Shown here: one piece after another, positions 1,845 to 49,819 of the stretch
Numbering within the stretch: position 1 is the first letter of the stretch
How the letters are laid out: every line of letters begins with the position of its first letter
Assembly (NCBI GenBank): GCA_038087875.1
Contig: JAXLNO010002420.1
Span: 1 to 64,000, forward strand
Length of the DNA stretch: 64,000 bases
DNA from: Malacoraja senta
Taxonomy: Eukaryota
Reading direction: 5' to 3'
Position numbers and translations under genes: made by a program
Notes under the pieces: generated by a model
The model's input: only the letters and a program-made list of their open reading frames with translations
What the model was told of the DNA's origin: nothing
Database searches by the model: none

Positions 1845-3051
1845 CAGTGGCGGACTGGCCAGGGTATCAGCTTGCCCGATGGCAAGTGGGCCCCTGATGA
1901 AGTGCCCCCCCCCCTATATCAAATAAAAATGCAATAAACAAACAAACACAGATAACTGTTTTAGTAATAAAAAGGAATAAGATGTATCTGGCAGCTAGAA
2001 TTACACTGAAAGTTTAATTTTTAAAAATATCCACAGTATCAACAGGGATGAACTACTTTTGAGTTAAAATTAGTCACAAAAATTTACATTCATTCAATCT
2101 CACAGGACTTATCTTATAATAATTACTTACAATATTCTCTGATTTTACCGCTCCAGTGTGATTTTTAATTCTTTGAAAAGGTTCTCCCAATACTTAAATG
2201 ACACCAAATAATAATATACTCCCAAAAAATTTCGGTTGGCAAGTGAGAAAATTTTGTATCAAAGATATGTCCGTATTTTTGTCACACACACTTGAAAAGC
2301 CTCAGCCTGCCCCCCCCCCTTATTGAAGAGATGTTTTTAATTTTTAGTTTTTGTATATGTATAAAAGATCATTGTTGCATATAACTTCTTGTTGCATCAT
2401 TCACCAGGCGGCCAGACGTGGCGTGGCTCCTTTACCATTCTTTTTATATAGTTTTTCAAGGATCGTAAAAAAAAATTATCGGTAAACAATATCCAAATTC
2501 AGCTACATGTGAGTTCAAATTTAGATATTAGAAAAACGTAATTGTTACACCAGGGTAGGCTCCAGTTATCCATAGTAATTATCTGGTTATCAGTGACTGC
2601 ATTGAAAATATTATATGAAAAGTTAATGAAGCCTGTTCTTCAGCATATGTGCTTAAACATAAGTTATTGTTAAAGCTATGTGAGAGGTATTATCAATATT
2701 CAGGATTTTTTCATGCATATATTCTTGTGAATCATTGTTCTCAGTGATGAACATTAAGTATCGTAAAAGTAATAGCCTTACAGATGAAACTAGTAGTGCT
2801 TGCATATCTCTCAAGGTTAACAAATATAAACCGGATATAAAATATGTGTCATCAGCGATGCAGCAGCAGGACTCATTGATGCTAAATGTATAAAACGTCC
2901 ACAATTATTATTCGGTATGTGCTTAAAGGTATTATCTGTGAGCGACTACTTTCAGTTGTGCCAAGTAATGATGGTACAGGACAGGGACTTTTTGATCTAT
3001 TGATTGAAACATTACAGCATCTTAAAATTGACCCCCAAAAATGTTTATCTG

Positions 3052-4714
3052 TATTATGTTTAACTATATTACAAAGTTAGAAACTAGTATTCCAAATCTA
3101 TTAAATCTAATAACACAATTTGGTCAGTTCTCAGGATATAGGATTAATTGGAATAAAAGTGAAATTATGCCAATAACAAAATTCAACTTAAATACAATAC
3201 AACAATCCCCTTTTAAAATAGTTAAAGATAAACTTAAATATTTAGGAATCTATGTAACTAAGACATATACCTCTTTATTTAAACAAAATTTTCCATCCTT
3301 ACTTAATAAATTACACAAACATATTCAGTACTGGAAAACACTTCCTATTTCAATGCTTGGTAGAATTAATGCTATAAAAATGATTTTCTTACCGCAACTA
3401 CTATATTTATTTCAATTAATTCCGATATATATTCCAAAAAACGTTTTCAAAAAAGTCGACTCCATTGTTTCAAGCTTTATTTGGGATTATAAGAATCATA
3501 GAATAAGTAAAAAACATTTATGGAAGTCAAAGAGCAACGGAGGTTTGGCCTTGCCAAATTTATTATTTTATTTTTGGGCAGTCCATATTAAAAACATAAA
3601 TTTCTGGCTGGAAGAAATGGACCAACAACCAGAATGGTTAAGGATGGAAAAGGAAGACTGTTTACCTTTTGAAATAGGTTCGATTATATTTGCTACCACA
3701 AAATTGCATAAAAAAACCTATAAGGAAAACCCTATAATACATAGTGGAATACGAATTTGGAAACAATTAAAAAAGGCTTTAAAACTGAATAATATACCAC
3801 TATGCCTTCCCATTGTAAATAATCCTCTATTCAAGCCATCCATATTGGATAGAGGTTTTATACAATGGAAAAATCAGGGAATTAAAAGGATTGGACATCT
3901 TTATAGGGAAGGCATCTTTCTGTCATTTCAAGAGTTACAACAGAATCATGGACTACACTCAAATAACTTTTTCAGATATTTACAAATTAGAGATTATGTT
4001 AAATCCAATACACAAGTTTATAGGACTAGGGAACCAGAAATTCTTGATGAATGTTTGAATACGCATCCTAACACTGAAAAATTAATAGCTTATATTTATA
4101 AAATTCTCCAAAATAATGAGGAACCACCGATGGAACTATATATACATAAATGGGAAAATGAGTTAGGTTATCCTATTACGAAAGATATTTGGGACGAAAG
4201 TTTACAACATATACATCAATGTTCGTTAAATGCCAGACATGCTTTAATACAATTTAAAGTCTTACACAGATTACATTATTCCAAAATAAAACTAAATAGA
4301 ATTTTCCCACATATTTCTCCTATATGTGATAAATGCCTGCACCTAGAGGCCAATTTAACACATACCTTTGCAAATTGTATAAAAATTAAAAATTACTGGA
4401 CTGATATTTTTCAAATAATCTCTGAAGTTGTTAATACCAAATTGGCTCCAGACTCAAAATTAATAATACTTGGGATATCAGAACAAAGTTTAACACTCAC
4501 AACAAGCCAAAGAAACTTCCTTGACTACAGTATAATAACTGGGAAAAAATTAATATTAAAATTCTGGAAAGGCCCTACAACCCCCACAATTAAAATGTGG
4601 ATTGTGGAAATGTCGGAGACCCTACATCTAGAAAGAATTAGACTTGTCTTAATGGACAAGCAAGAACTTTTTGTTAAAATATGGGCTCCATTCATTGCCT
4701 ATTTGAAGGGATAG
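3052..4714 (+). CDS. L1 ORF2 remnant (post-RT region and C-terminal CCHC-type motif CDKC...HTFANC), uninterrupted
   Basis: Track ORF 3041..4714 (557 aa; its first codons lie in the TSD). Motifs SGYRINWNKSEI, LKYLGI, GRINAIKM, GGLALPN. The start is lost by truncation, so it is unlikely to be expressed. Confidence 0.85.
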
Positions 4715-4818
4715 AGTGGCCCAGCGCGAAAGCCCGACTGAAACTTTTTGTTAAAATATGGGCTCCATTCATTGCCTATTTGAAGGGATAGAGTGGCCCA
4801 GCGCGAAAGCCCGACTGA
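4665..4818 (+). repeat. Perfect 77-bp tandem duplication spanning the L1 ORF2 stop codon
   Basis: 4665-4741 is identical to 4742-4818 (aactttttgttaaaatatgggctcc...gcccgactga). Confidence 0.9.
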
Positions 4819-5592
4819 AGCTTGAACTCAGGATTAGATGTAATTATATTTCATAACCTACGAACTTATCTCCTATGACGTATTATAAGTTATTCATTCC
4901 ACCTCTTTTTCTTTTTTGATATTGTAATTCTTCTTTCTCTCTTTTCTTTCTTCTTTCTCTCTATTTTTCTTTTTCTATCTATATAAAAAAAAACACTAGA
5001 AGCAGAAATGACTGACAATTGACAAATTTAATAATGTATGAGTGATTGATGTATATGAAAAGTTTTTTCTTCTATTATAATATGTTACTCTACATTGTAA
5101 TATGTTTGCTTCTAATAAAAATTTATATCACAAAAAAAAAATGTTTATCTGATAGCACAGATGGCGCTGCAAGCTACTATGGCCAGTATAATGGTTTACA
5201 AAGTAAAATTGCTGATGTGGCTGATCAACATGTTCATATACAATACAATACAATACGGTTTTATTCGTCACATTGCACATAAAGTGCAAGTGAAATGGTG
5301 CTATGCCCATGTCTTGAATTTGGTGATAACTGAAACAACAAATGTTGTGAGCCTGCAGTTTCTTTTTTCAATTTGCTCCAGAATAGAGCAACTTTTGTGA
5401 AAGCATCATACAAGAGAATGGCTGTATGGATAGAAGTTGTTGGAAAACATCTAGGATAAGAAAAAAATGAAACGATTAAAGCTAATTGGTGAGACCAGAT
5501 GGTCAGGAAAATCCAATGCAGCAACAACTATATTTGGAAGTTTTGATGATGCCGCTGCCAGTACTTTCGTAAATCTATTGACATGATTATCA

Positions 5593-6630
5593 ATGATACA
5601 AGATTCAGAAAAGTTTGATGCAAAAACAAAACATGAAGCAAATGTTTTACTTCAAAGTCTTCTAAAGTTTGAAACCATATTGACAGCATTTCTTTACTTG
5701 TATATATTTGAAACTACAACCCCGTTATCAAGTTATCTACAGACAAGTGGGTTAGATATGTTTACTGCATGGAGTTTGGTAGATTCAGCTACAACAAAGT
5801 TGAAGGAACAGACAAGAACATTTAATAACGTTCACAGCAAGGCTTTGGAATTTGTAAAGAAATGTAATGACAGGATTTCACAGATGAATATGGATGAAAA
5901 TCAAACATTGGAAATTATTGCGTTGGAAACAGCATTGCCAGTTAAGAGGCAGAGGAAGAAGAAAATAATGGCAGATGAGCTTATTGATGATAAAAGAAAT
6001 TCCTCAGATTCTCTAGCTGATTTTTGAGTAAATGTGTTTAACCCAATAATGGATCGCATTGTCCAGTCACTAGAATCACGCTTTGTACAACACAAACAGT
6101 TGTATAAAGATTTGTCCTGCTTGGACCCAGCAAAGTTTAAAACTATTGCAGAGAAGGGCCTTGAAGATGAAGCATTGGAAGGTATTATTAAGCTGTTTCC
6201 ACAAATCAGCAAAGATCAAGTAATATTGGAATTGTTTTCTTTTGCTTCAAACTTTGATGTATTAAAGTTGCTTAATGATGGTGAGAATATGGATTCCAGT
6301 TGCAACAATTGTAAAATGTGCAGCACTTGCCCATCGAGTGTACTAAACATTCTGGCATCCAACAGACTTCATGACAAGGCATATGATAACCTTTATCAAC
6401 TTTATAAAGTCATCTGCACACTATCAGTTACTCAAGTCCAATGTGAGAGGACATTTTCAAAGCTAAAGATCATAAAGACAAGGTTAAGAAATTCGCTGTC
6501 TGAGGAGAATTTGGAATCATACATGTTGCTAACCATTGAAAAGGAATTGTTAGATGAATTGGATGCAGAAGCAATTATTGGCAGATTCGCACAATCATCT
6601 AGCGAACACAAACGATTGCTCTTAATATAG
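5593..6630 (+). pseudogene. hAT transposase C-terminal portion, one in-frame TGA at 6025-6027
   Basis: ORFs 5593..6027 and 6034..6630 are in the same frame, separated by one stop. The hAT dimerization domain is at the end. Upstream parts (about 2650-3050 and 5150-5590) are frameshifted. Confidence 0.85.
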
Positions 6631-14953: not shown

Positions 14954-15005
14954 ATGCTTCTTTTTACCTTACTGAACACTTACGGTGTGGCCACTGTCTC
15001 CTCTG
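14954..15005 (+). CDS. MHC class I-like exon 1, signal peptide MLLFTLLNTYGVATVSS
   Basis: ATG at 14954, hydrophobic 17-aa leader ending in small residues, donor G|gtaagc at 15006. The phase-1 G joins AT of exon 2 to give Asp1. Confidence 0.8.
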
Positions 15006-15308
15006 GTAAGCAATACTGCTTCAACCTGTGAACTTTGAGGAAACAACAAAACTGATTATATTTACTGTTGCACAGTGCCTGTGTTTGCCCTGGGTTCATT
15101 ATCTTGGATGTATTAATTGAATGATTGAATTGAATGTATTAATAATTTTGGGTAACGGTCTTTCCTTAGTTGTAAAGGCTCCTGTGGGAAGTTATATATA
15201 CTATGGTTACCTTGGCAATCCATTGAACAGAAGAACTGAATACATGTAAATAATGAACATAGAACATAGTACAATACAGCACAGGAGCAGGTCCTTCAGT
15301 CCTTCAGT

Positions 15309-15336
15309 CTGATGAAGGGTCTCGACCCGAAACGTC
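15309..15336 (+). ncRNA. Minimal hammerhead ribozyme-like core in a Penelope terminal repeat (intron 1, sense strand)
   Basis: CTGATGA, extra A, stem II GGGTC-TC-GACCC, GAAA, palindromic ACGT in place of helix III, GTC cleavage triplet. Hammerheads in Penelope termini are established; activity of this copy is untested. Confidence 0.6.
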
Positions 15337-18300
15337 ACCCGTTCCTTTTCTCCAGAGATGCTGCCTGACCCGCTGCTACCTCAGCATTTTGTCTACCTTC
15401 GGCCCACAATGTCTGTGCCGAACAAACTAAACTAATCTCCTCTACCTGTATGTGATCTGTATCCGGCCATTCCCTGCCTATCTATGTACCTATCTAAAAG
15501 CCTCTGAAATGTAACTGTTATATCTGCCACCATCACCACAACCACCACTGGCAGCGCGTTACAGATGTCCACCACCCTCCACATAAAACAACTTGCTCCG
15601 CTCATCTCCTTTGAACATTGCTTCTCCAACCTTAAAGTGATGTTCTCTGGTCTTCAACATTTCCACCCTGGGAAAAAGGTTCTGGCTGTCCACTCTGTCT
15701 GTGCCTCTCACCATGTTGTGCACTTTCATCAGGTCTCCCTTCAACCTCCAGTATACAAGAGAAAACAATCCATGTTTGTCCAATCTGTCCTTGCACTAAT
15801 GCCTCAGACAGAATTCAGGTGATGTGCACTTTCAATAAAGAAGTGACTTCTGCATTAGTAGGTGTTCCACCTCTCCAAGATTTCCTCAGCTGGTGTTAGA
15901 CACCCACATGATGGTAAAATTCAGCCTGCATTAAATGACCAATCAATGTTGTGTTAATGTTGTTGCCATCTTGTTGTTTGTTGCATGCTTCCTGTCCTGC
16001 AGACCCTATCCATTACCCCATCACCACTTCCCCAGAAGACGATAATGAGATTTAAGAAGCTTGAGGATAGGCACGTGGATATGCAGGGAATTGAGGGATA
16101 TGAATCATCTACAAGCATGAAGAGTTTAGTTGAACTTGACATCATGTTCGGCACAGACATTGTGGCCGAACTCCAGCCCATTACACCCTTAATGAACAAA
16201 AATCTATCAATCTCAATCTGGAAATTTTCAAGTGGGCAACATATTCAACAGATTACAGAATCGAGAACCAGAGGACATAGGTTTAAATTGAGGGGGGAAA
16301 GATTGAATGGGAATCTGATGAGCAATTTCTTCCCACACAATGGTACCTTTCTAACTATTCTGACATTCGTCAAGGCTTGGAGATTACAAACCTACTCGTC
16401 CTGAAAGTTTCATCCCATTGTTATCAAATGAAAGTAAATATAATGGTGTTAAAGAAGGAACTGCAGATGCTGGAAAATCGAAGGTACACAAAAATGCTGG
16501 AGAAACTCAGCGGGTGCAGCAGCATCTATGGAGCGAAGGAAATAGGCAACGTTTCGGGCCGAAACCATATAATGGTGATGGCCATGTTGAAATAATAACA
16601 TATAAAACAAAAATCCTTGGCTGTGGAGTGTTTTGCGAAGCCACATGGATTTTATCGTTACTGTATTCCACTCTTAGCCGTCTTATGTTTCTCCTGGTAA
16701 CACTGAAACAGACACTTCTAACTCTGCCCTCGGGGCCCCTTCTCACTTCACTTAAACACATGAACTTTGACACTGTCTGGTGTGCTGCATGTAATCTTTA
16801 TCACAGAACAAATACTGCTTATGCATGTGGAAACAAGAAACTGCACATGCTGGTTAATACACATAAAATACTGGAGTAATTCAGCAGGTCAGGCAGTATG
16901 TCTGGAGAACATGGTTAGGTGATGTTTCAGTTGACACAAGTGTAGGAAGGAAGTGCAGATGTGTAAGAAGGAACTGCAGAAGCTGATTTAAACCGAAGAT
17001 AGACAATAAAGCTGGAGTAATTCAGCGGCACAGGCAGCATCCCTAGAGAGAAGGTATGGGTGACGTTTCGGGTCGAGACCCTTCTTCTGACTGCTGATGC
17101 AGATGCTGGTTTACACCGAAGATAGATACAAAAGGCTGGAGTAACTCAGCAAGTCAGGCAGCATCGCTGGAGAAAAGGAATAGGTGGAGTTTCAGGTCAA
17201 GACACTGCATCAGACAGAGTCGGGGGTGCATATATTTCATTGTACTTTGTCATATCTCTCGGTTCTCTGTCCCCTGACTCTCATTCTGAAGAAGGGTCTC
17301 GACACGAAACGTCACCTTTTCCTTTTCTCCGGAGATGCTGCCTGACCCACTGAGTTACTCCAGTATTTTGTGTCGAGTTTCAATTTAGGCCCTGTTTATC
17401 TCAGTCTCCACCACCCCCCCCCCCCCCCCATCTCTATGAGCTGTGTTGCAGCTGCCTATGAGGACCTGGACTCAATCCTGATCTCTTACAACCTGGCTTT
17501 TTTTTCCCCCTGCAAACGTGTGTTTGCTATGGTTATTCCAGTTTCCCCGCACGTCCCCAAAATGCCGGGCTGAAAGGTAAATTGGCCAGTGTGAATTGGT
17601 CATGCATATGTATTAGAATTGGTGGAGGGGATGAGGGAGGTGTTAATGGGAGATTGGCAAATATTAAAAGGGTTAGCGTACCACAGGTATAAATAGGTGT
17701 TTGATGGTCACCACGAACTTGGTGGGCTAAAGGGCCTTTTATGTGCTGTACCCAGTGGACATAAGTTTAAGATGAGGGGGGAATGATTTAATAGGAACCT
17801 GAGGCATAGCATTGTTACACAAAGGGTGGTGGGTGTACTGAATGAACTGCCGGAGAAGGTAGTTCAGGCGCGTACTGTCACGACATTTAAGAATCATTTA
17901 ATCAGGTACATGGATAGGATAGGCTTATAAGGATATGGGCCTCAGTCAGCTGTAGAGCCCACATCAATGGATATTTCTCAGGTGGAGATTAACAGATTCT
18001 TGATCAGTATGGGTTTCAAGGGTTATGGGGTGCAGGCAGGAGAATGTGGTTGATAGGGAGAGATAGCTCAGCCATGATTGAATGGCCGATGGGCTGAATG
18101 GCCTAATTATTCTCCTAGAACTTATGTACTGATGAAATACAGGCAGTGTAGATGAGGCATGTTGGTTGGTGTGGCAAGTTGAGCCATAGGCCCTGATTCC
18201 CTGCTGTATGACTCTTTGACTTTACCTCTCTATGATTCTATAAAGTCTCCTTGACATTGTCCAGTTTCTTGATATAATAAAATATTCTTCAAATTTTGGA

Positions 18301-18439
18301 ATATTGTAACTAGTAGAACCTATCGACATGATAGACAATAATAGATCTTTGAAGATGGGAAACAATCCAGTAGGATCATTCAATACCTCGACCATAATTG
18401 GTGGAGTAGGTATCAGAGCCCATCATGCCAACTCTTGAA

Positions 18440-18750
18440 GAAGGCTCAGTGGTGCAGCGGTAGACTTACTCGATTACAGCACCATAGACCCAGGTTGGAT
18501 CCTGATTACGGATGCTGTCTGTACGGAGTTTGTCCATTCTCCCCATTACCGTGTGGGTTTTTCCCGAGATGTTCGGATTCTTCCCACATTCCAAAGACGT
18601 ATAGGTTTGTAGGTTAATTGGCTTGGTCTAGAATGTAAATTGTCCCTAGTGTGTGTAGGATAGTGTTATTGTGTGGGGGTTGCTGGTCAGTGTGGACTCG
18701 CACGAAGGGCCTGTTTCCATGCTGTATCTCTAAGCTAAAAACTAAACTAA
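18440..18750 (+). mobile_element. V-domain SINE (HE1-like), intron 1
   Basis: tggtgcagcggtaga...ggttggatcctgattacgg...ttcccacattccaaagacg...gggcctgtttccatgctgtatctctaagctaaaactaaa. Confidence 0.8.
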
Positions 18751-18941
18751 AGGCTCCTGACCCAAATTGTCACCTAATCATTGATGCTGCCTGCCCCACT
18801 GAGTTCATCCAGCACTTGCATCTGCAGGTCCTTGTGACTCCCTTATTCAAAGTTATTGTATTGTTATCAGTTTTAGCATTAATAACTTAGTTATTTTCAG
18901 TGAATGATACAATCATACTTATTTTTGTTTATGCATTGCAG

Positions 18942-19202
18942 ATTTACACCATCTTGCATTTTACTACCTGTTGAACCATGGATTGAATGAGCTGCCTGAG
19001 TACAGTATGGTAGCAATGCTGGATGACGTCCAGATAGCATATTTTGACAGCACACTAGAGCGGGCTGTTCCCAGACAGCGATGGATGGCCCAGTCTTTCC
19101 CGCAGGATCACTGGGATTCAATGGCCATCACAGTTGCAGGTTTTCATGGGATTGTCAGAGGAAATGCTGAGATAGTCTACCAACAGCAACATGGTATCTC
19201 GA
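18942..19202 (+). CDS. MHC class I-like exon 2, alpha1 domain (DLHHLAFYYLLNHGLNELPEYSMVAMLDDVQIAYFDSTLERAVPRQRWMAQSFPQDHWDSMAITVAGFHGIVRGNAEIVYQQQHGIS)
   Basis: Acceptor ttgcag|, donor A|gtaagt, 261 nt, phase 1-1. Overlaps track ORF 18971..19372. Alpha1 motifs P20, D29-D30, FDS, PR..W, W60. Confidence 0.92.
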
Positions 19203-19469
19203 GTAAGTGTCGTGAGCGGACCTGGGGTAGAGACCCAGTGATGACACAGATGGATTTTGTTTTAGTTTTATTGTTGACACATGATTCTCTGATACACTTT
19301 TTTTGCGTTAGTCAATCACATCAAAGAAAACTATTCATAAATACAATCAAACCAAACTCGTACAATAGGTAGAGCAAAGAGTGCAGAATGTAGTTCTCAG
19401 CATTGTAATGTACCAGTGCCAGAGACAAAGTCCAGTGTCTGCAATGGGGTTGAGGTGAACCCTAGCATA

Positions 19470-19880
19470 AGGGAGGACTGTTCAGAAACCTGATAACATA
19501 GGGGAGGAAACAGTTACTGAGTCTGGTGGTGCACGCTTTAATGCTTACGTACCTTCTGCAGGAAGAAGAAGGAGTGACCAGAAGGGGACAAATCTTTGAT
19601 TATGTTGTCTGCTTTCCTGAACCAGTTGAAATACAGATGGATTCACTGGTGGGGAATCATGTTTGTGTGATCGACTGTGCTACATCTCCACCTCTCTGCC
19701 ATTTCCAGCGGTCTTGGGCAGAACTCTTTCCAAACTAAGTTGTGATGCAACCTGTCAGTATGCTTTCTATGGCACATTTGTAGAAGTTTGTAAGAGTCAT
19801 TGGAGATGCCGCATTTCCTTAGTCTCCTGAGGCAGTAGGGGAACCAGAAACTCTCAACCTTTTTCACTTCAGCACCATTG
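19470..19880 (-). mobile_element. Rex1/Babar-like LINE RT 3' fragment, intron 2
   Basis: The minus strand reads LRRLRKCG...; it matches the + strand copy at 51680-52420. Clade assignment is from motif recall. Confidence 0.6.
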
Positions 19881-20952
19881 ATGCTGTTTCAGACATTTAC
19901 TCCATCACATTTTGATAGAGACACGGCCCATCGTCTATATTTAATGTGTCCTAACTGCTGAACACACAGTCATAACAGTTGGCTGGTGATAGTCTCTTTA
20001 TGGGTTAAGCATTTGATATTCAACACCAGTAATAAGTGGATGGATTGGATCATCTGTTTTGTTGGGCTGGAATGAGGGAGAAACCATTAGTTTATTTATA
20101 GCCTGATCATCTAGAGATGGGATCTTGATTTAAGCTGGTTGATGGTGACTATGAGGTATTCCCTCAGTAATAATATTGTGTTAATCCAGCATCCCCTCAA
20201 TATTGGCAACAATCCTCAGAGGGTGTAGCAATCCCACACAGTGCAACAGCCTTGATGTACTTCCCATCTGCATTGCCTTAACCTTCAGACTGACCTGTTG
20301 GCTCTGTAGCATTGCCCATCTGACAATGCACTTCTTCCTCTGTTCTTTATGTACGACAGTGCAGAATCTGAGTTCCACCCTTCTGACACAGCAGAACTCC
20401 TTTAGTGTTACATCCGCAACAGTAAAGCTCCCCCCCCCCATAACACTTGAGGTTAGTCCATGCCCTCAGTATATAGACCATGGGTTATTGAGTCACACAT
20501 CATGGAAACCGGCCCTTCTGCTCACTGAATCCACATTGATCATCCATTGTGCTAAGATGGAGTCACAGCAAACTGCAGATGCTGCCAATCTGAATTTAAA
20601 ACAAACAGGAGGAACTCAACGAGTCAGGCAGCATGCTGTGGAAAAAAGGACAGAAAACATATGAGACCAGGACCATTTAGAGTGATGGGGTAGAGTGGAG
20701 AAAGCTGGAAAAGAAAAGTAGTCTGTGTAGGATAGTGTTAATATGCGGGGACCACTGGTCGGTGCGGACTCGGTGGGCCGAAGGGCCTGTTTCCGCGCTG
20801 TATCTCTGAGCTAAACCTGCTCCTGTGCTGTACAGCTCCATGTTGTGTTCTGTTATGCCTGTTTGTACCATGCTGAGAACTGATTTGTAAATTGCCTCTC
20901 CCTTCCATCCACTCTCCCCAACACAAATCCTCCACCCCTACCTCAGCCCCAG

Positions 20953-21228
20953 CTGTTTGCTTTGTGCAGGGTTTCTGCGGCTGTGAAGTGGACAGTGACA
21001 ATTCCACTGATGGGTTTGTCAGACTGGGTTATGATGGGGAGGATGCCTGTGCTTTTGACAAGGACAGAATGCGCTGGATTGCACTACGTCCAGATTTCCA
21101 GATGCTAGCAGATCGGTGGAACGTCAACACCTTCATGAACAAGTATTTTAAAGATCTCCTGGAGAAGGACTGTGTGAAGTGGCTGCGGATATATCTGGAG
21201 TGTGGACAAGAAGCACTACAGAGGAGAG
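20953..21228 (+). CDS. MHC class I-like exon 3, alpha2 domain (TVCFVQGFCGCEVDSDNSTDGFVRLGYDGEDACAFDKDRMRWIALRPDFQMLADRWNVNTFMNKYFKDLLEKDCVKWLRIYLECGQEALQRR)
   Basis: Acceptor ccccag|, donor G|gtacac, 276 nt (the usual alpha2 exon length), phase 1-1. C101 and C164, GYDGED, W133, W147, W167 and Y171 are present. Overlaps track ORF 20892..21254. Confidence 0.93.
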
Positions 21229-21324
21229 GTACACGACGTAGGCACTCTGACTGATGGGCCAGAGGATATCCTCTGGATAGATCAGGTGGGAAATATCATG
21301 CACTTCAGGCTGTCACTTGAGTAA

Positions 21325-21620
21325 TTATTTAGTTTAGTTTAGAGATACAGCGCGGAAACCCACCGAGACCGCACCGAGCAGCCATGCCCGCACACTAACA
21401 CTATCCTACACACACTAGGGACAATTTGCATTTATACCAATCCAATTAACCTACAAATTTGTACGTCTTTCGAGTGTGAGGGGAAACCGAAGATCTCGGA
21501 TAAAACCCACGCAGGTCACAGGGAGAACGTACAAACTCTGTAAAGACAAGCACCCGTAGTTAGTAACAAACCCAGGTCTCTGGCGCTGTAAGGCAGTAGC
21601 TCGATCGCTTCGCCACCCTG
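21325..21620 (-). mobile_element. V-domain SINE (HE1-like), intron 3
   Basis: (TTTAG)n tail, then agatacagcgcggaaac...gtacgtctttcgagtgtgaggggaaaccg...tctctggcgctgtaaggcag. Confidence 0.8.
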
Positions 21621-22432
21621 TTCTACAACGTGGGTATCAGTAAATTGTCTGGCAACGTGCCTCTTAGATGGAACCAGTGGGTAGGAAGTGCAAGTGAAAG
21701 ATAAATATTGTACCAGTGTCCTTTATCCACAGTCATATAGATATTCAGGAAATGGAGGAATATGTATCTTGGTCTTATGTTTAGCACCGACCTTGTGGCC
21801 TGAAGGGTCTGTTGCTGAACTGATCAGAAACCCAATCAGATTCTCTATTTGCCTCTATTACTCCTTGGGATGGTGACATTCAATTTCCAACAGTTCTCTA
21901 TTTGAAGAACTTCTTCCTCCCATTCCCTCTTGGAATATTTAGTGTTATTATTCAGCAGAGATTCATGAACAGGTAGAAGCAATCATGTCTACAGTATCAA
22001 TCCCAATGGTGAGTTATACTGCTCCATTGGGCCTGCATTCCCCTTTCATCTGTGCTGTCAGTTAAAGTCTGGAGCTAAGATAAGGAGCATGTCAGTGATA
22101 TTAAAGCTAAATGTTTTGTTGTTTTGCCAGAAATGCAAAATGAAAAGAGAAAAGGCTGTAAACTTTGTGCAAGATAGAACTGCAGATGATGGTTTACACT
22201 GAAGATAGAAGATGTTGGTGTAACTCAGTGGGTCAGATAGCATCTCTGGGCATTCCTTCTCTCCAGAATGCTGCCTGACCTGCTGAGTTATTCCAGCATT
22301 TTGGGTCTAGGCTGAAAACTTAGTTCAGCCAGAGAAAAAACTCTGATTGGGAAAGTGGTGAGTTGCAGTGATCTTACAATTGAAGGCTTTTGTTCATGTC
22401 TTCACTGATTCTGACTCTTCTTACACTTGCAG

Positions 22433-22705
22433 AAACCCCTGAGGTGTTTATTGGGATTAAACGTGATGGGTCGCAATCACTGAGACTCTCCTGCCTTGTC
22501 ACAGGCTTCTAGCCACGGGCCATCGATGTAACGTGGCTGAGAGATGGTGAGGGGGTCCATGAGTCTGAATCCAGTGATCTGTTGCCCAATTGGGATGGGA
22601 CTTACCAGCTGAAGAATACAATTCAACTGAATAGAGAAGATGTGGCAAAATTCTCCTGTTACATCGAACATGCAACTCTGCTGCAGGGAGTCAATGTTCC
22701 ACAGG
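22433..22705 (+). CDS. MHC class I-like exon 4, alpha3 Ig-C1 domain with in-frame stop (ETPEVFIGIKRDGSQSLRLSCLVTGF*PRAIDVTWLRDGEGVHESESSDLLPNWDGTYQLKNTIQLNREDVAKFSCYIEHATLLQGVNVPQ)
   Basis: Translated by hand. Acceptor ttgcag|, donor G|gtaagt, 273 nt, phase 1-1. Ig-C1 motifs L.C..TGF.P..I.V.W, LPN.DGTYQ and FSC.IEH. TAG at 22510-22512 replaces the Tyr of GFYP, which is why the ORF track misses this exon. Confidence 0.92.
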
Positions 22706-22799
22706 GTAAGTGGCAAGTCAATGAGGCTGATCACTTGAGACCATAAACCTCCTGGACTGAGATAACAGTCTCAACTCACACTCTTAACTAAGCTGTGGA

Positions 22800-23435
22800 T
22801 TTAGACTTTAGGCTTTAGAGATATGCTGCAGATACAGGCCCCTCAGCTCACTGAGTCCTCGCTGAATAGTGATCAACCCATACATTTACACTAACCTACA
22901 CAGTACGGACAATTTACAATTTTACCTAAGCCAAGTAACCTACAAACCTGTATGTCTTTGTAGTGTGGGAGGAAACCCACGCAGTCACAGGGAGAACATA
23001 CAATGTCCTTGCAGACAGCACCTGTAGTCAGGATCAAACCCAGGTCTCTGGTGCAGTAAGGCAGCAGCTCTACCGCTACGCCACTGTGCCACCCATTATT
23101 AATTTGTGGTTATCTAATTGCTCATAATTATTGATAGTCAATGGAATGTGGTTTTAGTTTAAGAGATACAGCGCAGAAACCGGCCCTTCAGCCCACCGAG
23201 TCTGCGTCAACCAGCGATCCCTGCACACTTACATTATCTTACTTATTAGGGGACAATTTACAATTATACCAAGCCAATTAACCTACAAACCTGTATGTCT
23301 TTGGACTGAGTGAGGAAACCGGAGATCCAGGCAAAACCCACGCAAGTCCCGGGGAGAAGGTACAAAACTCTGTACAGACGGGACCCGTAGTCAGAATTGA
23401 ACCGGGTCTCTGGCGCTGTAAGGCAGCAGTTCCAC
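22800..23435 (-). mobile_element. Two adjacent V-domain SINE copies (about 22800-23095 and 23150-23435), intron 4
   Basis: Each has the tail, the V core (gtgtgggaggaaacc / gtgaggaaaccgg) and the tRNA-like head in the same orientation. Confidence 0.78.
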
Positions 23436-23899
23436 CGAGTGGGCAAAGCAGAGCCAAATGGAATACAGTGTAGCAAGTGTCTGGTTTTACATTTTGGCAG
23501 TCAGAATAAAGACATAGACTATTTTCTAAATGGGGAGAGAATTGAGAAACCTGAGCTACAAAGTGGGAGTACTAGTGCAGGATTCCCAAATAGTTCATTT
23601 GCAGATTGAGTCAGTGGTAAGTAAGGCAAATGCAATGCCAGCATTCATTTCGGGGGGCGTAGAATATAAAAACAATGATATAATGCTGAGGATTTATCGG
23701 GCACTGGTGAAGACACATTTGGAATATTGTGAGCAGATTTGGGCTCCATATTAGAAAGGATGTGCTGGCTTTGGAGAGGGTCGAGAGGATGTATGTCCTG
23801 GGGATGATTGATTTAACGTATGAGGAGTGTTTGAAGTCTCTGTGCCTGTGCTCATGGGATTTAGAAGGATGAGGTGGGAATCTCATTGAAACCTACCAG

Positions 23900-26800
23900 C
23901 AGGGCCGGATTTAGATGAAGAGAGGCCCTAAGCTGTTCCACTTGTGAGGCCCCCCCCCAATCCCCCACCCCCACGACCAGAGGAAGATGGTCCACCAGAT
24001 TGACACCGATTTGCAGCCGAGCGTGGCCAATGAGATAAGGGGCTGGAAAGCTGGGCTTTATTTATTTATTTATTGCCACTGCTAGTGTCGAGTTATTGGC
24101 TTAAAACACTATTATTCTGAAATGGAGGGCAAGGAAAATTACTGAAGTGTTGTTTAGAGACTACAGTGCGTTGTGACAGCATATGTAAGAAAGGCCTATG
24201 ACAGTGTCAAAAATATTATACACCTTGCAGGGCTCTCACTTAATTTTTTTTCTCTGTTGTCAGCCGGGCAACCTTGGTAGCTTTTTAAGTTGCCAAATGA
24301 CAGTTTAGGTGGTTATTTAAGATGGCTTGCATGACACGTGCGATAATGTGCTCGGACGACCAGTCAGAATTATGCTCAATGAAGCATTCACATATTATTT
24401 CTGCTTCAAATAAAGCCACAAACTAAACATATTCACCAATCAGGACATGATATATACCACAATGACATGCAGCACAATTATAATACTGTATCTTAACTCT
24501 TTTTACACGTTGCAATGAATGCAATTTCTATTATTTCTTTCCACTTCCAAAAAAAAATGTGGTTGGATTATTCAGCGTATGATCAACCTCGGTGAGACCA
24601 AGTGCAGGCTTGGCGATTGCTTCGCACAACACCTCCACTCAGTTCGCAATAACCAACCTGATCTCCCGGTGGCTCAGCACTTCAACTCCCCCTCCCATTC
24701 CGAATCTGACCTTTCTGTCCTGGGCCTCCTCCATGGCCAGAGTGAGGCCCACCGCATATTGGAGGGGCAGCACCTCATATTTGCTTGGGTAGTTTACACC
24801 CCAGCGCTATGCACATAGGCTTCTCTAATTTCAGGTAGTCCTTGCTTTCTCCCTCCTTCCCCTCCCATTCCCAGCTCTCCCACAGCCTACTGTCTCCGTC
24901 TCTTCCTTTATTTTTCATGTCATTCCCCCCCCCCCCCGACATCAATCTGAAGAAGGGTCTCGACCCGAAACATCGTCTATTCCTTCGCTCCACAGGTGCT
25001 GCCTCACCCGCTGATTTTCTACAGCTTTTTTGTCTACCAATGGGATCCCACAACTGGCCACATCTTCCCATCTCCTCCCCTGTTGGCTTTCCATAGAGAC
25101 CGCTCCCTCCGTAACTCCCTGGTCAATTCGTCCCTTCCCACCCAAACCACCCCCTCTCCTGGCACTTTCCATTGCAACTGCAGGAAATGCTACACTTGGC
25201 GTTTTAATTAAGTTCAAGACAATGGGGCTGTACATTGGCCATAAGGTTGCTGCCTAAAAGTGCCAGAGACCTGGAATTGATCCTGAATATGGGTGTTGTC
25301 TGTTTGGAGTTTGCTCCTTTTCACTTTGATCGCATGGGTTTTCTTCGGGTGCTCTTGTTTCCTTCCACATTCCAAAGGTGTGCAGGAACCTATTTCAGAA
25401 CCAACCCTAAACGTAATATTTCCCTTTTGTCCAGAGATTCTGTCTGACCTGTTGAGTTACTCCAGCTTTGTGTGTCTATCTTCAGTTTAAACCAGCATCT
25501 GCAGTTCCTTCCTACACACACGATACTATACGATAGAACTTTATTAATCCCAGGAGGGAAATTGTGTGTGTGTGCGTGTGGGTATATATACTATGCACAC
25601 ACACACACACACATATATATATACAATACAATTACAATACAATTTTATTTGTCTTTTGGACAAATTTGTCATTTGGACCCCGTTGAGGTCCAAACGAAAT
25701 GTCGTTTCTGCAGCCATACATTACAAAACGAAGAAGACCCAAGACACAACACAATTTACACATACATCCATCACAGCGCTGTGATGGAAGGCAAAAAACG
25801 TATCTCTCCACTGCACTCCCCCCCCCCACCCCCCCGATGTCAGAGTCAAAGTCAAAGCCCCCGGCGGGCGATGGTGATTATCCCGCGGCCATTAAAGCCA
25901 CGCCGGTTAATGCAGGGTCGCGCACCCCGCCTTGGTGTTAGAGCCCCGGCGCGCGCTCGCAAAGTCCGGCGGCCATTCCAAGCCGCGCGGGGCGGTGATG
26001 TAAAGCCCCCCTCCAGGTGCTCTTCAACCCCGCAACTCGGGCGGGAGAAGTCGCCGCTGCGGATGCCCCGAAAAGCGGTGTCCCACCAGGGGACCCACGG
26101 GCTTCCGGTGTTGCCGTCCGCCAGACCCGCGGTTGTAGCCTCCGAATCTCCGGGGGTCGGGTAGCAGCAGCGATTGTCTCCACCACAGCTATAAATATAC
26201 ACCGTTTTGTTTTCTCGTTTATAACATTGTTTACCGAGTACTATGTTTACATATTCTGTTGTGCTGCTGCAAGTAAGGATTTCATTGTTCTAACTGGGAC
26301 GTGAGAGAATAAACTCTTGACTCTTGACTTACTTCGCTAATGTGTGGGAAAGAACTAGTGTACGGGTGATCAATAGTCGGCGTGGACTCGGAGGGCTGAA
26401 GGGCCTGTTTCCACGCTGTATCTTCAAATTAAGCTAAAGACACTAAAACCAGAGGGAGTCTAAAGAAGTGTTTCTACCCGAAACGTCACCCAATTTCTTC
26501 TATCCTGAGTTGCTGGCTGCTCCATGGAGTTCCCCCGCACAATTAAAGCATGGAATAGTCTTCACCCTACCATAGTTACCCAACCAGACGCAACTAAATT
26601 TAAGGTACCTATTTTTTCCCCAAGAACCCTTTTTTGCTTAAGTCCAAGTCAAGAGTCAAGAGAGTTTTATTGTCATGTGTCCCAGATAGGACAATGAAAT
26701 TCTTGCTTGCTGCAGCACAACATAATATGTGAACATAATACAGAACAGGAGACCATATACCATAGACCATATATATACACAATAAATAAACAGATAAAAT

Positions 26801-27398
26801 GCAATAGGCTGTTATTGTTCAGCCCTCTACCACCTCCAGTTTAAATTCCTTTTAGAATATTTATGGAGGATCAGGAAACCAGAAGCGAGAGTTACTCCAG
26901 GGAGATACTCCTGATCCAGGGTCAGGGAGTGATTCTGTGTTAGTTTTCAGCGGTTGCGGCGAGGCAGCAATGGCGGCCAAATCTCCCACAATTCAAAGCG
27001 AGGGAGAAAGTGCCCAGCGCCGACCAGTTGCCGTGGCAGTGCGCATGCGCAGGGCGGCCGATGACGTGCGGGCTGTGGTTGTGCGCATGTGCAGGGGAGG
27101 ACGTGCTGGCCGTAGCAGTGTGCATGTGCAAGGCGGCCGGCCGTGCTGGCGGATGAGGAGCGAGCGGAGAACGGAGACCCGGACACGGAGAGTGACAGAC
27201 GGAGATAGAGATAGAGAGGGGGGCCGCCCCGCCCAGAGTTGAACGGCTGGTGTCCTGCCTTGGCCGGAGGCCCCCTATATTTCAGGGCCCCAGGCTTCAG
27301 CCTATGAAGCCTAGTGGTAAATCCGGCTCTGCGAGCCCCTCCTAGATCTCCAGGCCCTAAACTGAAGCTTGTCCATCTTATATGTAAATCCGGCCCTG
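23900..27398. mobile_element. Non-autonomous hAT element (3.5 kb including nested Penelope, SINE and other inserts)
   Basis: 14-bp TIRs CAGGGCCGGATTTA (23900-23913; reverse at 27385-27398) and 8-bp TSD CCTACCAG (23892-23899, 27399-27406). No transposase seen. Confidence 0.88.
24570..25200 (+). mobile_element. Penelope-like element fragment (GIY-YIG end, terminal repeat, then a repeated upstream segment)
   Basis: ORF 24519..24818 has GETKCRLGDCFAQHL...PVAQHFN..SH, followed by ctgaagaagggtctcgacccgaaac. Confidence 0.8.
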
Positions 27399-28754
27399 CC
27401 TACCAGATAATGAAATGCCTGGTTAGTTGATGGGAAAGGAAGTTTTCAGTAATGGGAGAGTCTAGCACAGCCTCACAATAAAAATACCTACCTTCAATAT
27501 GGAGATGAGGAGGAATCTCTTTAGTCACAGGGTGGTGAATCTGTGGAATTCATTGATACAAACAGCTGTGTGGGTCAAGTCATTGCATATTTTTCAAGCA
27601 GAGATTGATAGGTTCTTGATGAGTACGGGTGACAAAGGTTACAGGGAGAAGGCTAGAGAATGGGATTTAGCGGTAAAAAATAGATCTGCTATGACTGAAT
27701 GGTGGAGTAGACTCAATGGACTTGAAAAGCATTATTCCGCTCCAATATCTTATGGTCAAAATTATTCTTATGTCACCCTTAACTCACCCATCCAAATGTA
27801 GGAACAGTGGAAGCAAGATAGGCTGATCCTGGACAAGGTCTCTTATCTTCTTCCTTGGGCATCTAGCTAATTTTCTGATAGTAGCTAGTTACACAAAAGA
27901 CCAATAGTGGTGCCATATTATCAGGCTGAAGTAGCAGCACCTGTTCTGTAGCTGACTTATTTGTTCCAGACAAGACCTCTGCAAAGATCTTCACACCAGG
28001 GCTAAGCTGACATGGTTAAGATTGCTGGTCAGTACAAATAGACAGTAGTGTTAATGTCTGTGTGTGCCTATGTGTGTGTGGGCTCATGTGTGTGAGACAG
28101 TGAGGGGGAGAGAGAGAGAAAGAGAGAGCATGTGTATGTGAGAAAATTAAACTCAGATATCATTGAAATATCAGCAAAGATTAAAACCTTTGAAGTTTTA
28201 TCAACTATAAATGGGTTCACTTTTATTTGCTATAATAACAATCAACATAAGAAAATGGCCTTGTTGACCTCTACACTGTAAATAGTCATCTATTTCTGAC
28301 GTACTTGATTCTTTAAATTCTTAATTAAATGCTGCAGATAAAATCTCAATACCTCAATGCTAATATGAACTTAATGATTTTTCATTGATCATTTTAAGCA
28401 CATCCATCCTCTGTATAAATACTTAAATCTAAAACGTTATTACTTTTTAATTAGATATGAACAGTGCTACTTTAATTTAGATAATAAAATCATTACAATG
28501 TTGTTATTGATCACTAAATGTTTAAAATGCACTATACAGTGGCTTGCAAAAGTTTTCATACCCCTTGAACTTTTCCACATTTTGTCACGTTACAACCACA
28601 AACGTAAATGTATTTTATTGGGATTTTATGTGATAGACCAACACAAAGTGGTGCATAATTGTGAAGTGGAAGGAAAATGATACATGGTTTTCAAATTTTG
28701 TTACAAATAAAAAACTGAAAAGTGTCGCGTGCAAAAGTATTCAGCCCCCCTGAG

Positions 28755-29776
28755 TCAATACTTTGTAGAACCACCTTTCGCTGCAATTACAGCTGCAAGT
28801 CTTTTGGGGTATATCTCTACCAGCTTTGCACATCTAGAGACTGAAATTTTTGCCCATTCTTCTTTGCAAAATAGCTCAAGCTCAGTCAGATTGGATGGAG
28901 AGCATCTGTGAACAGCAATTTTCAAGTCTTGCCAGAGATTCTCAATTGGATTTAGGTCTGGACTTTGACTGGGCCATTCTAACACATGAATACGCTTTGA
29001 TCTAAACCATTCCATTGTAGCTCTGGCTGTATGTTTAGGGTCGTTGTCCTGCTGGAAGGTGAACTTCCGCCCGGGTCTCAAGTCTTTTGCAGACTCTAAC
29101 AGGTTTTCTTCCAAGATTGCCCTGTATTTGGCTCCATCCATCTTCCCCCATCAACTCTGACCAGCTTCCCTGTCCCTGCTGAAGAAAAGCATCCCCACAG
29201 CATAATGCTGCCACCACCATGTTTCACAGTGGGGATGGTGTGTTCAGGGTGATGTGCAGTGTTAGGTTTCCGCCACACATAGCGTTTTGCATTTAGGCCA
29301 AAAACTTCAATTTTGGTCTCATCTGACCAGAACACCTTCCTCCACATGTTTGCTGTGTCCCCCACATGGCTTGTGGCAAACTGCAAACGGGACTTCTTAT
29401 GGGCTTTTTTCAACAATGGCTTTCTTCTTGCCACTCTTCCATAAAGGCCCGATTTGTGGAGTGCACGACTAATAGTTTTCCTGTGGACAGATTCTCCCAC
29501 CTGAGCTGTGGATCTCTGCAGCTCCTCCAGAGTTACCATGGGCCTCTTGGCTGCTTCTCTGATCAATGCTCTCCTTGCCCGGCCTGTCAGTTTAGGTGGA
29601 CGGCCATGTCTTGGTAGGTTTGCAGTTGTGCCATACTCTTTCCATTTTCGGATGATGGATTGAACAGTGCTCCGTGAGATGTTCAAAGCTTGGGATATTT
29701 ATTTATAACCTAACCCTGTTTTAAACTTCTCCACAACTTTATCCCTGACCTGTCTGGTGTGTTCCTTTGGCTTCAT
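28755..29776 (-). pseudogene. Tc1 transposase (DD34E), inactivated by one nonsense codon near 29700 and a frameshift near 29140
   Basis: ORFs 29096..29686 (GRPPK, WSDETKIE, KHGGGSIMLWGCF) and 28755..29141 ([20 protein letters not shown]). Probable ATG (MKPKEH) at 29776. Confidence 0.9.
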
Positions 29777-29857
29777 GATGTTGTTTGTTCACTAATGTTC
29801 TCTAACAAACCTCTGAGGCCTTCACAGAACAGCTGTATTTATACTGAGATTAGATTA

Positions 29858-30210
29858 ATAATAATAATAATAATAATGGATGGGATTTATATAGCGCCTT
29901 TCTAATACTCGGCGCTTTACATCGCATTATTCATTCACTCCTCAGTCACACTCGGTGGTGGTGAGCTACTTCTGTAGCCACAGCTGCCCTGGGGCAGACT
30001 GACGGAAGCGTGGCTGCTAATCTGTGCCTACGGCCCCTCCGACCACCACCAGTCACTCACACACATTCACACACATTCACACGCAGGCAAAGGTGGGTGA
30101 AGTGTCTTGCCCAAGGACACAACGACAGTATGCACTCCAAGCGGGATTCGAACCGGCTACCTTCCGGTTGCCAGCCGAACACTTAGCCCATTGCGCCATC
30201 TGTCGTCCCG
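29858..30210 (-). mobile_element. tRNA-derived SINE of a different family (gtgtccttgggcaagacact core, L2-like tail with (TTA)n), nested in the Tc1
   Basis: 6-bp TSD AGATTA (29852-29857, 30211-30216). On the minus strand: A-box TGGCGCAATGG, B-box GGTTCGAATCC, tail gaaaggcgctatataaatccc followed by (TTA)n. Confidence 0.82.
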
Positions 30211-30527
30211 AGATTACACACAAGTGGACTCTATTTACTAATAAGGTGACTTCTGAAGGCAATTGGTTGCACTGGATTTTATTTAGGGGTATCAGAGTAA
30301 AGGGGGCTGAATATTTTCGCACGCGACACTTTTCAGTTTTTTATTTGTAAAAAAATTTGAAAACCATGTATAATTTTCCTTCCACTTCACAATTATGTGC
30401 CACTTTATGTTGGTCTATCACATAAAATCCCAATAAAATACATTTACGCTTGTGGTTGTAACGTGACAAAATGTGGAAAAGTTCAAGGGGTATGAATACT
30501 TTTGCAAGCCACTGTATATGCCAACAG

Positions 30528-30748
30528 AGAGGGCAGTGAAAGAAGATATGAAGATTAGGATCGTGACTGGAGCTGTAATTGTTCCTCTCATTCTCCTGGG
30601 GATCATCCTTGGAATTGGTTGCTGGAAGAAGAGGAAAAAGAGAAAACCTTTCAATGAACAGGTACCAGCTGACAACAGCAGAGACCAGGAGAGGACCATG
30701 AAGCACAATCAGCTTCCTTTGGGATGCAGAGGAGGTCTACCGGAATGA
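30528..30748 (+). CDS. MHC class I-like exon 5: connecting peptide, TM helix (IVTGAVIVPLILLGIILGIGCW), basic stop-transfer (KKRKKRK) and cytoplasmic tail; 3' boundary is either a donor after 30661 or the stop at 30748
   Basis: Acceptor caacag| in phase 1, compatible with exon 4. About 22 hydrophobic residues followed by a polybasic run. Within track ORF 30473..30748. Confidence 0.8.
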
Positions 30749-49420: not shown

Positions 49421-49819
49421 CCCTAAGTATAGATATAGGGAAAGATACAGCAGCCTGAAAACCGTGACAACCAGATTCAAGAATAGTCTCTTCTCAGCAA
49501 TCATCAGGCTCTTCAACACCACACAAAACTAACTTCAGCATCTATGATCATCTACGGACTGTCTTTGAATGTAATATGAATTTAGTTTTTTGCACTATTA
49601 TGATAGTCCAGTATTACAGTTATTAATTTATTGTTATATTGATTGTTTTATATTATCTCTGTGTTATTGCAGTTACATGCAGGTGAAGCTGCAGCAAGTC
49701 AGAATTTTGTTGTTCTATTGTTGATACATAAGACAATTAAACAACTCTTACCTCGCATTTGATTTTGGGTAAAGCTCACTCCATATTACCCCCACCATAC
49801 ACTCAGGAAAAGTACAAGG

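Follow-up and report, generated by a model that had tools for sequence, protein, structure and literature searches.

The class I gene found in the window, as we call the whole 64,000-nucleotide stretch of Malacoraja senta DNA that was analysed, is probably the skate member of an old, low-copy MHC class Ib lineage close to UGA and UFA (the orthogroup in the following), one whose groove would suit hydrophobic ligands and whose copy is disabled in this species. The features of the locus, in window positions, are as follows.

14954..15005, plus strand: exon 1, start codon and 17-residue leader, donor GT, phase 1
18942..19202, plus strand: exon 2, α1 domain (Pfam MHC_I, E 1.4e-5)
20953..21228, plus strand: exon 3, α2 domain (Pfam MHC_I, E 2e-16)
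22433..22705 (273 nt), plus strand: exon 4, α3 Ig C1-set domain, interrupted, donor GT at 22706
22510..22512, plus strand: in-frame TAG (codon 223 of 360) where the conserved GFYP motif has its Tyr
28534..30517, minus strand: decayed Tc1/mariner transposon, inserted in intron 4 and ending about 10 nt short of the acceptor of exon 5
30528..30748, plus strand: exon 5, connecting peptide, transmembrane helix, basic stop-transfer and cytoplasmic tail, ending with TGA
56377-56422: leader exon of the Malacoraja senta UGA gene, 25.6 kb downstream of the gene

The five exons have AG/GT sites and phase 1 throughout, and exons and splice sites alike recur in the L. erinacea orthologue. The α1-α2 platform (Pfam PF00129), the Ig C1-set α3 domain, the transmembrane helix and the phase-1 exons place the gene in the MHC class I superfamily. 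The gene model and junctions of the original prediction were confirmed by the splice sites and their phase, the Pfam domains and the L. erinacea counterpart exons; the α3 exon had been given there without its 3′ end, which is at 22705. The leader peptide of exon 1 is the same at the L. erinacea locus and resembles the leaders of the Pristiophorus and Heptranchias orthologues. The closest solved relative of the α1 exon is 9ch4 (UGA; E 2.4e-22), and the α2 exon encodes the C101-C164 pair and a free Cys at HLA position 99, which is kept in 12/12 orthologues. The C1-set match (E 6.9e-9) falls on the α3 portion downstream of the stop. Exon 5, which is conserved throughout the orthogroup, fits exon 4 in phase, is also used by RefSeq in modelling the L. 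erinacea orthologue and encodes a cytoplasmic tail without any Tyr. A possible donor within this exon (CAG/GTACC) was dismissed; L. erinacea has GGACC at that place. Contigs of a related skate, from a run whose identification as RNA is just a guess, fit the acceptor at 18942, where one match begins exactly after 21 unmatched letters, and the donor at 22705, where a match stops exactly and is followed by 38 further letters. RNA runs of Malacoraja senta were sought and none was found. A tblastn search of the 64-kb window with the exons of the gene and the lineage panel detected no other class I sequence except the UGA leader exon.

The full class I architecture that had been predicted is thus present as far as exons, splice sites and domains are concerned, but it is reached only if the in-frame TAG at 22510-22512 is read through. 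The TAG is very probably a real stop. Contigs of two Malacoraja senta DNA runs, X1 (22361-22741) and X2 (22369-22559), cover it with 0 differences, and no letter other than TAG was found there in either run. Since the depth of the unitig across the stop (171.7) matches the summed depth of the two variants (133.5 + 39.8), both variants carry it. Two related skates (runs X3 and X25) have C at 22512, which gives TAC, and Tyr occupies this column in 11/11 other aligned orthologues. The change from TAC to TAG ends the product after 25 residues of α3, so that the second Ig cysteine and the membrane anchor are lost, and since it lies 193 nt 5′ of the last exon junction, the mRNA would be expected by the usual rule to be degraded by nonsense-mediated decay. 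With its reading frame interrupted, as seen in the DNA contigs of both runs, this copy is unable to make a class I molecule, and most likely it is dead. In comparison with L. erinacea, the exons are 94.5-96.7% identical and the flanking and intron stretches compared roughly 92-94% (mismatches only), dN/dS is 0.63 and there are 5 derived changes on each side, which fits a recent loss.

The Tc1 element is the second lesion of the Malacoraja senta copy. The 2-kb insertion has inverted terminal repeats of 224 nt that are 95% complementary, and its transposase (HTH_Tnp_Tc3_2 and DDE_3 domains, minus strand) is broken into two frames. It is bordered by a TA duplication, and the site is empty in L. 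erinacea.

The gene might nevertheless be functional in the species, the TAG being either an error of the assembly or consensus or a rare null allele carried by the sequenced animal, and most animals having the full protein, but we regard this as clearly improbable. The TAG is the only coding lesion, every splice site is intact and the derived changes are not in excess of those in L. erinacea. Moreover, the two DNA runs belong to one study and their independence from the assembly is not assured; the stop could on that account be a null allele that is not fixed. However, the contigs of the two samples have TAG alone, whereas both runs show both alleles at 19028 (a V/L polymorphism) and 21122, and the depth argument assigns the stop to both variants. 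The insertion by the last acceptor is a further lineage-specific lesion, and the protein searches returned no protein of the same lineage from the Malacoraja senta genome. A dead copy remains the preferred reading.

The orthogroup is low-copy and comprises 12 sharks and rays (54-91% identity). Identity to the L. erinacea protein is 54-72% within it and then falls to 33-36% for other class I proteins. The window product is 91% identical to the L. erinacea orthologue when gene-model artefacts are removed, and the two loci are collinear over 23 kb. A second L. erinacea copy (P0182, L002) was rejected as the counterpart; this copy is partial, a paralogue with about 90-92% identity to the window. 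In the tree, the orthogroup is monophyletic (100/100) with a batoid/shark split within it, and the Malacoraja senta gene is nested with L. erinacea in the batoid branch (100/100). The whole signature of the orthogroup (F7, H59, Q84, L143, R146, L159, Y171, G97 and C99) is present in the window gene. The gene had been predicted to be non-classical, and this was corroborated by its position outside the classical-type sequences, with which it does not cluster, and by the replacement of six of the eight anchors. The suggestion that it might belong to UFA did not hold, since the UFA (8gm8) lineage forms a clade apart (100/100), which includes skate members of its own. The orthogroup stands beside UGA (98/91) and, judged from the tree, is most likely its sister, but this assignment is provisional because pairing with UFA instead was not rejected by the AU test (p = 0.30).

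UDA has been described as a single-copy elasmobranch class Ib gene (PMC10751288), and the orthogroup may already bear this name. Literature giving UDA, UFA and UGA by sequence was not found, the MBE supplement labelling its genes only "MHC-Ib", nor was a primary paper found by searching with PDB codes and lineage names. It is possible, although we put it forward only tentatively, that the orthogroup represents a third, so far undescribed CD1-like lineage that presents ligands in sharks and rays. It would then date back at least to the shark-batoid split and have the most apolar and most invariant groove of elasmobranch class I, with an invariant free cysteine on its floor. If so, Malacoraja senta would be a natural knockout. 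The Malacoraja senta copy itself adds little beyond indicating that loss of the gene is possible in a skate.

The grooves of classical class I molecules of the UAA type have the anchors Y7, Y59, Y/R84, T143, K146, W147, Y159 and Y171, and this full set was seen in teleost U and in one shark sequence. In the MAFFT alignment (HLA numbering) the window gene has F7, H59, Q84, L143, R146, W147, L159 and Y171, a pattern that is fixed in the orthogroup; W147 and Y171 alone are kept. All the replacements read earlier from a hand alignment (Y7>F, Y59>H, R/Y84>Q, T143>L, K146>R, Y159>L) were reproduced, and none of the anchors was restored. The non-polar residues listed in the original prediction were likewise all recovered, both on the floor (L5, F7, Y9, M24, G97, C99, V114, L116 and C124) and on the helices (M63, V67, F70, I73, V74, I80, V81, M152, F156 and L159). 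Over 45 groove positions, the window gene is 62% apolar with 2 charged residues and the orthogroup 62-68% apolar with 2-3, compared with 43-53% and 6-11 in classical-type grooves. The groove of the orthogroup is the most apolar and least charged among the elasmobranch class I groups compared, and, judged from the aligned residues, its apolarity is beyond chance. Invariant positions make up 26/45 of the groove versus 53/133 of the rest of α1-α2 (permutation p≈0.01), and the lineage shows no variation at Gly69, Gly76, Gly97 or Cys99. Stronger conservation in the groove than in the remainder of the platform is an argument that the site is occupied.

The structure was modelled with AF2 on α1-α2 of the L. 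erinacea orthologue (91% identical) in place of the window product. The model has the platform fold (pLDDT 91.4), and among solved structures it comes closest to shark UGA, 9ch4 (37% identity over α1-α2, with Z 25.1 and an rmsd of 1.8 Å for 179 residues); the PDB titles name 9ch4 as UGA and 8gm8 as UFA. By sequence, the L. erinacea orthologue (P0001) matches 9ch4 with E 3e-60, the skate UGA orthologues with E 9e-118. The top solved-structure matches include no member of the orthogroup, and this, together with the apolar and conserved groove, makes the protein a good target for ligand elution and structure determination in species in which the gene is intact.

CD1 and EPCR are class I-like lipid binders with apolar grooves, and cartilaginous fish have several non-classical class I lineages. 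For the lineage studied here, lipid-type binding, as originally proposed, can reasonably be inferred from groove composition and kinship. In species with an intact gene, the locus encodes a transmembrane class I heavy chain, which presumably pairs with β2-microglobulin. Its groove, from which six of the eight peptide-terminus anchors are lost and which appears to be lined almost wholly by invariant apolar or small residues, would hold one conserved hydrophobic ligand, most likely lipid acyl chains, and the ligand might be displayed to an innate-like lymphocyte receptor.

Two other uses of the groove have to be weighed. It could take a small hydrophobic metabolite, possibly via Cys99, or be closed, the molecule being a ligand-free partner like HFE or FcRn. 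This is rather unlikely, but several observations are consistent with it: α2 is nearest to MR1 chains by sequence and the RefSeq label is MR1-like, the tail has no tyrosine sorting motif, Gly69, Gly76, Gly97 and Cys99 are invariant, and HFE and ZAG match as well as CD1 structurally (Z 21.6-21.9). Against it, the Schiff-base Lys43 of MR1 is replaced by Ala and its Arg9 and Arg94 by Tyr and Val, UGA is the nearest relative and shares half of the groove consensus, and the conservation of the groove above that of the platform speaks for occupancy. Hydrophobic peptides or lipopeptides bound in the class I manner, as in chicken YF1, are highly improbable. W147 and Y171 are kept, R146 is a conservative change from K146, and chicken YF1 with acylated glycine (Z 23.3-23.5) comes within about 2 of the top match; however, six of the eight anchors, including Y7, Y59, Y/R84, T143 and Y159, are replaced across the lineage, and the groove is invariant between species, not variable. 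Lipid binding thus remains the reading that we prefer for the intact orthologues.

MR1 binds ligands through the Schiff-base Lys43, and its Arg9 and Arg94 contact the ribityl chain. The orthogroup resembles MR1 in that MR1 chains score best of the solved families against the α2 exon (6e-17), in the two-residue shortening before W51 and in the DHW motif at 58-60. It differs in having Ala at 43, Tyr at 9 and Val at 94; identity is 30%, and other structures are nearer than MR1. Because the Schiff-base Lys43 and the Arg contacts are missing, the window gene is not an MR1 orthologue, and "MR1-like", the RefSeq name given automatically to the orthogroup, is unsupported by the groove residues.

CD1 of mammals, birds and reptiles, being monomorphic and class I-like with an apolar groove that lacks the anchors, provides a working functional analogy. 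There is no signal of orthology or of closest similarity that would make the window gene a CD1: the CD1 sequence stands apart in the tree as a long outlier, the match to Pfam MHC_I_3 falls under the cut-off, and the CD1 structures (chicken CD1-1, Z 21.9; human CD1d, Z 19.8) match no better than HFE or classical class I. Most CD1 molecules carry a tyrosine sorting motif, whereas the tails of the orthogroup have no YxxΦ and no conserved tyrosine motif. The absence of this endosomal motif counts against a lipid reading modelled on CD1 or UGA.

Whether lipid presentation dates from the first jawed vertebrates is an open question, to which UFA and UGA are now being applied. UFA has been described as CD1-like (PMC10751288) and UGA has been reported as lipid-binding on the basis of a personal communication quoted in a review (PMC12562908); what is said here of lipid binding by UGA and UFA comes from that review and from the PDB titles. 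UFA (8gm8, nurse shark) shares with the orthogroup the broad elasmobranch class Ib clade (94/83), the lack of anchors and the occurrence in sharks and rays. It differs in identity (32% over α1-α2, Z 19.6), in its poorly conserved groove (4/45 positions invariant), in its shorter proteins, in Cys instead of Trp at 133 and in having its own skate member (P0264). The window gene was rejected as UFA: nurse shark P0260, an "MHC class I protein" with the length and name of chain 8gm8_A, groups with its relatives in a clade of its own (100/100).

UGA (9ch4; skate XP_032898133 and XP_055521885) is the best solved match by both sequence and fold and the favoured sister clade. The two genes are head-to-tail tandem neighbours in Malacoraja senta, and 23/45 groove consensus residues are common to both groups, including L5, Y9, Y22, G69, F70, G97, M152, F156, L159 and Y171. 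The window gene is not UGA itself; each of the two clades has 100/100 support and includes both sharks and batoids, and a UGA gene of its own exists in the skate. UGA keeps Y7 and Y59, whereas the orthogroup has F7 and H59; F99 and W81 of UGA stand against C99 and V/F81 in the orthogroup, and at 34, 67 and 80 the polar or charged residues of UGA stand against apolar ones. A YxxΦ tail (DYQNI or DYQTI), found in skate UGA, contrasts with the orthogroup tail without a tyrosine motif. The orthogroup adds a third relative to UFA and UGA, with a groove more apolar and more conserved than that of either.

Window positions 14954-30748 carry one MHC class I gene of five exons on the plus strand, with AG/GT boundaries and phase 1 at all five. 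The three exon junctions of the original prediction (15005/18942, 19202/20953 and 21228/22433) proved correct when the exons were checked at AG/GT sites, and the 3′ end of the α3 exon, absent from that prediction, was set at 22705 by the donor GT at 22706. Pfam finds MHC_I, MHC_I and C1-set domains on the exons, but the predicted full class I architecture would require read-through of an in-frame TAG in the α3 exon, which the same first reading had recorded separately from this prediction.

Features of the class I gene
14954-15005, plus strand: exon 1, leader
18942-19202, plus strand: exon 2, α1 (Pfam MHC_I, E 1.4e-5)
20953-21228, plus strand: exon 3, α2 (Pfam MHC_I, E 2e-16)
22433-22705, plus strand: exon 4, 273 nt, α3 (Pfam C1-set, E 6.9e-9)
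28534-30517: Tc1/mariner element of 1,984 bp, frame-broken transposase on the minus strand
30528-30748, plus strand: exon 5, connecting peptide, transmembrane helix and tail

The TAG (22510-22512) occupies the place of Tyr in the conserved GFYP motif and lies upstream of the second cysteine of the Ig domain and of the membrane anchor. Contigs from four public runs were compared with window positions 18700-22900. In two DNA runs of the same species (X1 and X2, two samples from one study), the stop site is covered by perfectly matching contigs (22361-22741 and 22369-22559), and no alternative letter was seen at 22510-22512 in the contigs of these runs. They resolve two alleles, at 19028 (Val/Leu) and at 21122 (silent), and the contig depth over the stop (171.7) equals the depths of the two variants at other sites added together (133.5 + 39.8); TAG is therefore present in both variants. 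Two related skates, one represented by DNA (X3) and the other by a run guessed to be RNA (X25), have C at 22512 and thus TAC. In one X25 contig the match starts at 18942, after 21 letters that do not align, and another stops matching at 22705 and continues for 38 letters. These exon-bounded contigs are consistent with a spliced transcript in a relative, the RNA nature of X25 being only a guess. A search for RNA runs of the window's species found none. The window copy cannot make the class I molecule and, because the stop lies 193 nt upstream of the last exon junction, nonsense-mediated decay of its mRNA would be expected by the usual rule.

The Tc1/mariner insertion is counted as a second lesion of the gene. 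The element has terminal repeats of 224 nt each (95% complementary); a duplicated TA marks its insertion point, and the exon 5 acceptor follows after about 10 nt. In Leucoraja erinacea this site is empty. Both DNA runs also showed two variants of the locus at 19028, 19019 and 21122 in a depth ratio of about 3:1 rather than 1:1, which points to a pool of several animals or to an additional, nearly identical copy. The G/C difference at 19028 changes Val to Leu, the L. erinacea state, and those at 19019 and 21122 are silent.

A HMMER scan with α1 found a single 95%-identical protein, the L. erinacea XP_055486430, named 'MR1-like' in RefSeq. The L. erinacea locus aligns collinearly with the window for 23 kb and shares exons, splice sites and leader with it; the exons are 94.5-96.7% identical and the compared flanks and introns about 92-94% (mismatches only). 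The dN/dS ratio of 0.63 and the balanced derived amino-acid changes (5 vs 5) are consistent with a recent inactivation of the window copy. The RefSeq model of XP_055486430 is faulty at residues 182-193 and 88-91: it reads 12 residues of intron 3 as protein and joins α2 at another acceptor. It also omits the leader exon, though the leader is present in the locus (L001 100-151). Further orthologues, 54-72% identical, were found in batoids and other elasmobranchs (Pristis, Mobula, Hypanus, Pristiophorus, Heptranchias, Scyliorhinus, Stegostoma, Hemiscyllium, Mustelus, Cetorhinus and Chiloscyllium); outside this orthogroup, identity to any other class I falls to 33-36%.

In a maximum-likelihood tree of 57 sequences, the orthogroup, UGA and UFA were each monophyletic (100/100), each with sharks and batoids. 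The orthogroup joined UGA (98/91), followed by UFA (94/83) and then by a chimaera group. The AU test did not reject the alternative pairing with UFA (p = 0.30), and the sister relationship with UGA is therefore favoured, not proven. Membership in UFA itself, which had been considered, is contradicted by the separate UFA clade. Entry titles in the structure search show PDB 8gm8 to be shark UFA and 9ch4 to be shark UGA; by sequence, XP_055486430 matched 8gm8 with E 3e-32 and 9ch4 with 3e-60, and the skate UGA orthologues matched 9ch4 with 9e-118. The non-classical assignment was upheld, since both the tree and the anchor pattern place the gene outside classical class I. Classical class I, CD1 and MR1 identities were rejected, the last by the replacement of Lys43 with Ala.

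The orthogroup may already bear the name of the single-copy lineage 'UDA'. L. erinacea has a second, partial copy (contig JAMYXN010000412.1, 10226-14271; intron 2 through α3), about 90-92% identical to the window and to the main copy alike, and the lineage is thus not strictly single-copy in skates. The RefSeq model for this copy is an unusual protein of 263 residues (P0182).

Further downstream on the plus strand, at 56377-56422, is the leader exon of the skate's own UGA (MILFILLSFFRVQGA, donor GT at 56423), an arrangement paralleled in L. erinacea, which has both genes called on one contig. No further part of this UGA gene falls within the window, which puts its first intron at more than 7.5 kb. 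An ATG at 56356, upstream of the leader, is directly followed by TGA; at this position L. erinacea and Amblyraja encode Arg. At 3041-6627 (plus strand) the window also contains, in an AT-rich stretch, a long ORF of 557 codons with no Pfam match, adjoining a hAT dimerisation-domain remnant, and at 49751-50593 (minus strand) an ORF whose weak GIY-YIG match may mark a Penelope-like element.

The groove was scored at 45 positions in a MAFFT alignment with re-derived HLA numbering, in which all the groove residues originally listed were present.

Composition of the 45 groove positions
This lineage: apolar 62-68%; charged 2-3; invariant 26/45
UGA: apolar 47-56%; charged 4-7; invariant 17/45
UFA: apolar 43-67%; charged 3-8; invariant 4/45
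Classical-type: apolar 43-53%; charged 6-11

The anchors F7, H59, Q84, L143, R146, W147, L159 and Y171 are fixed in the lineage, except for Leu at 147 in three carpet sharks. Cys99, a free thiol on the groove floor and the first cysteine in a conserved C-G-C motif at the α2 start, is invariant in 12/12 species; batoids carry a second Cys at position 124. Invariance is higher in the groove (26/45) than in the remaining α1-α2 (53/133; permutation p≈0.01), and this extra conservation is the reverse of what a polymorphic presenter of peptides would show. Given its composition, its conservation and its relationship to UGA, the best-supported mechanism for the lineage is a monomorphic heavy chain, presumably paired with β2m, that would hold a conserved hydrophobic ligand, most likely lipid. 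For lipid binding by UGA, a review cites a personal communication (PMC12562908; see also PMC10751288).

The AF2 model of L. erinacea α1-α2 (pLDDT 91.4) was closest to the UGA structure (Z 25.1, rmsd 1.8 Å over 179 residues), followed by MR1 and duck, chicken and fish class I (Z ~23.5). UGA and the lineage have 23/45 groove consensus residues in common, whereas the polar groups of UGA at positions 34, 67 and 80 are gone in the lineage, smaller side chains are found (C99 for F, V/F81 for W), and the tail is without the tyrosine sorting motif of UGA.
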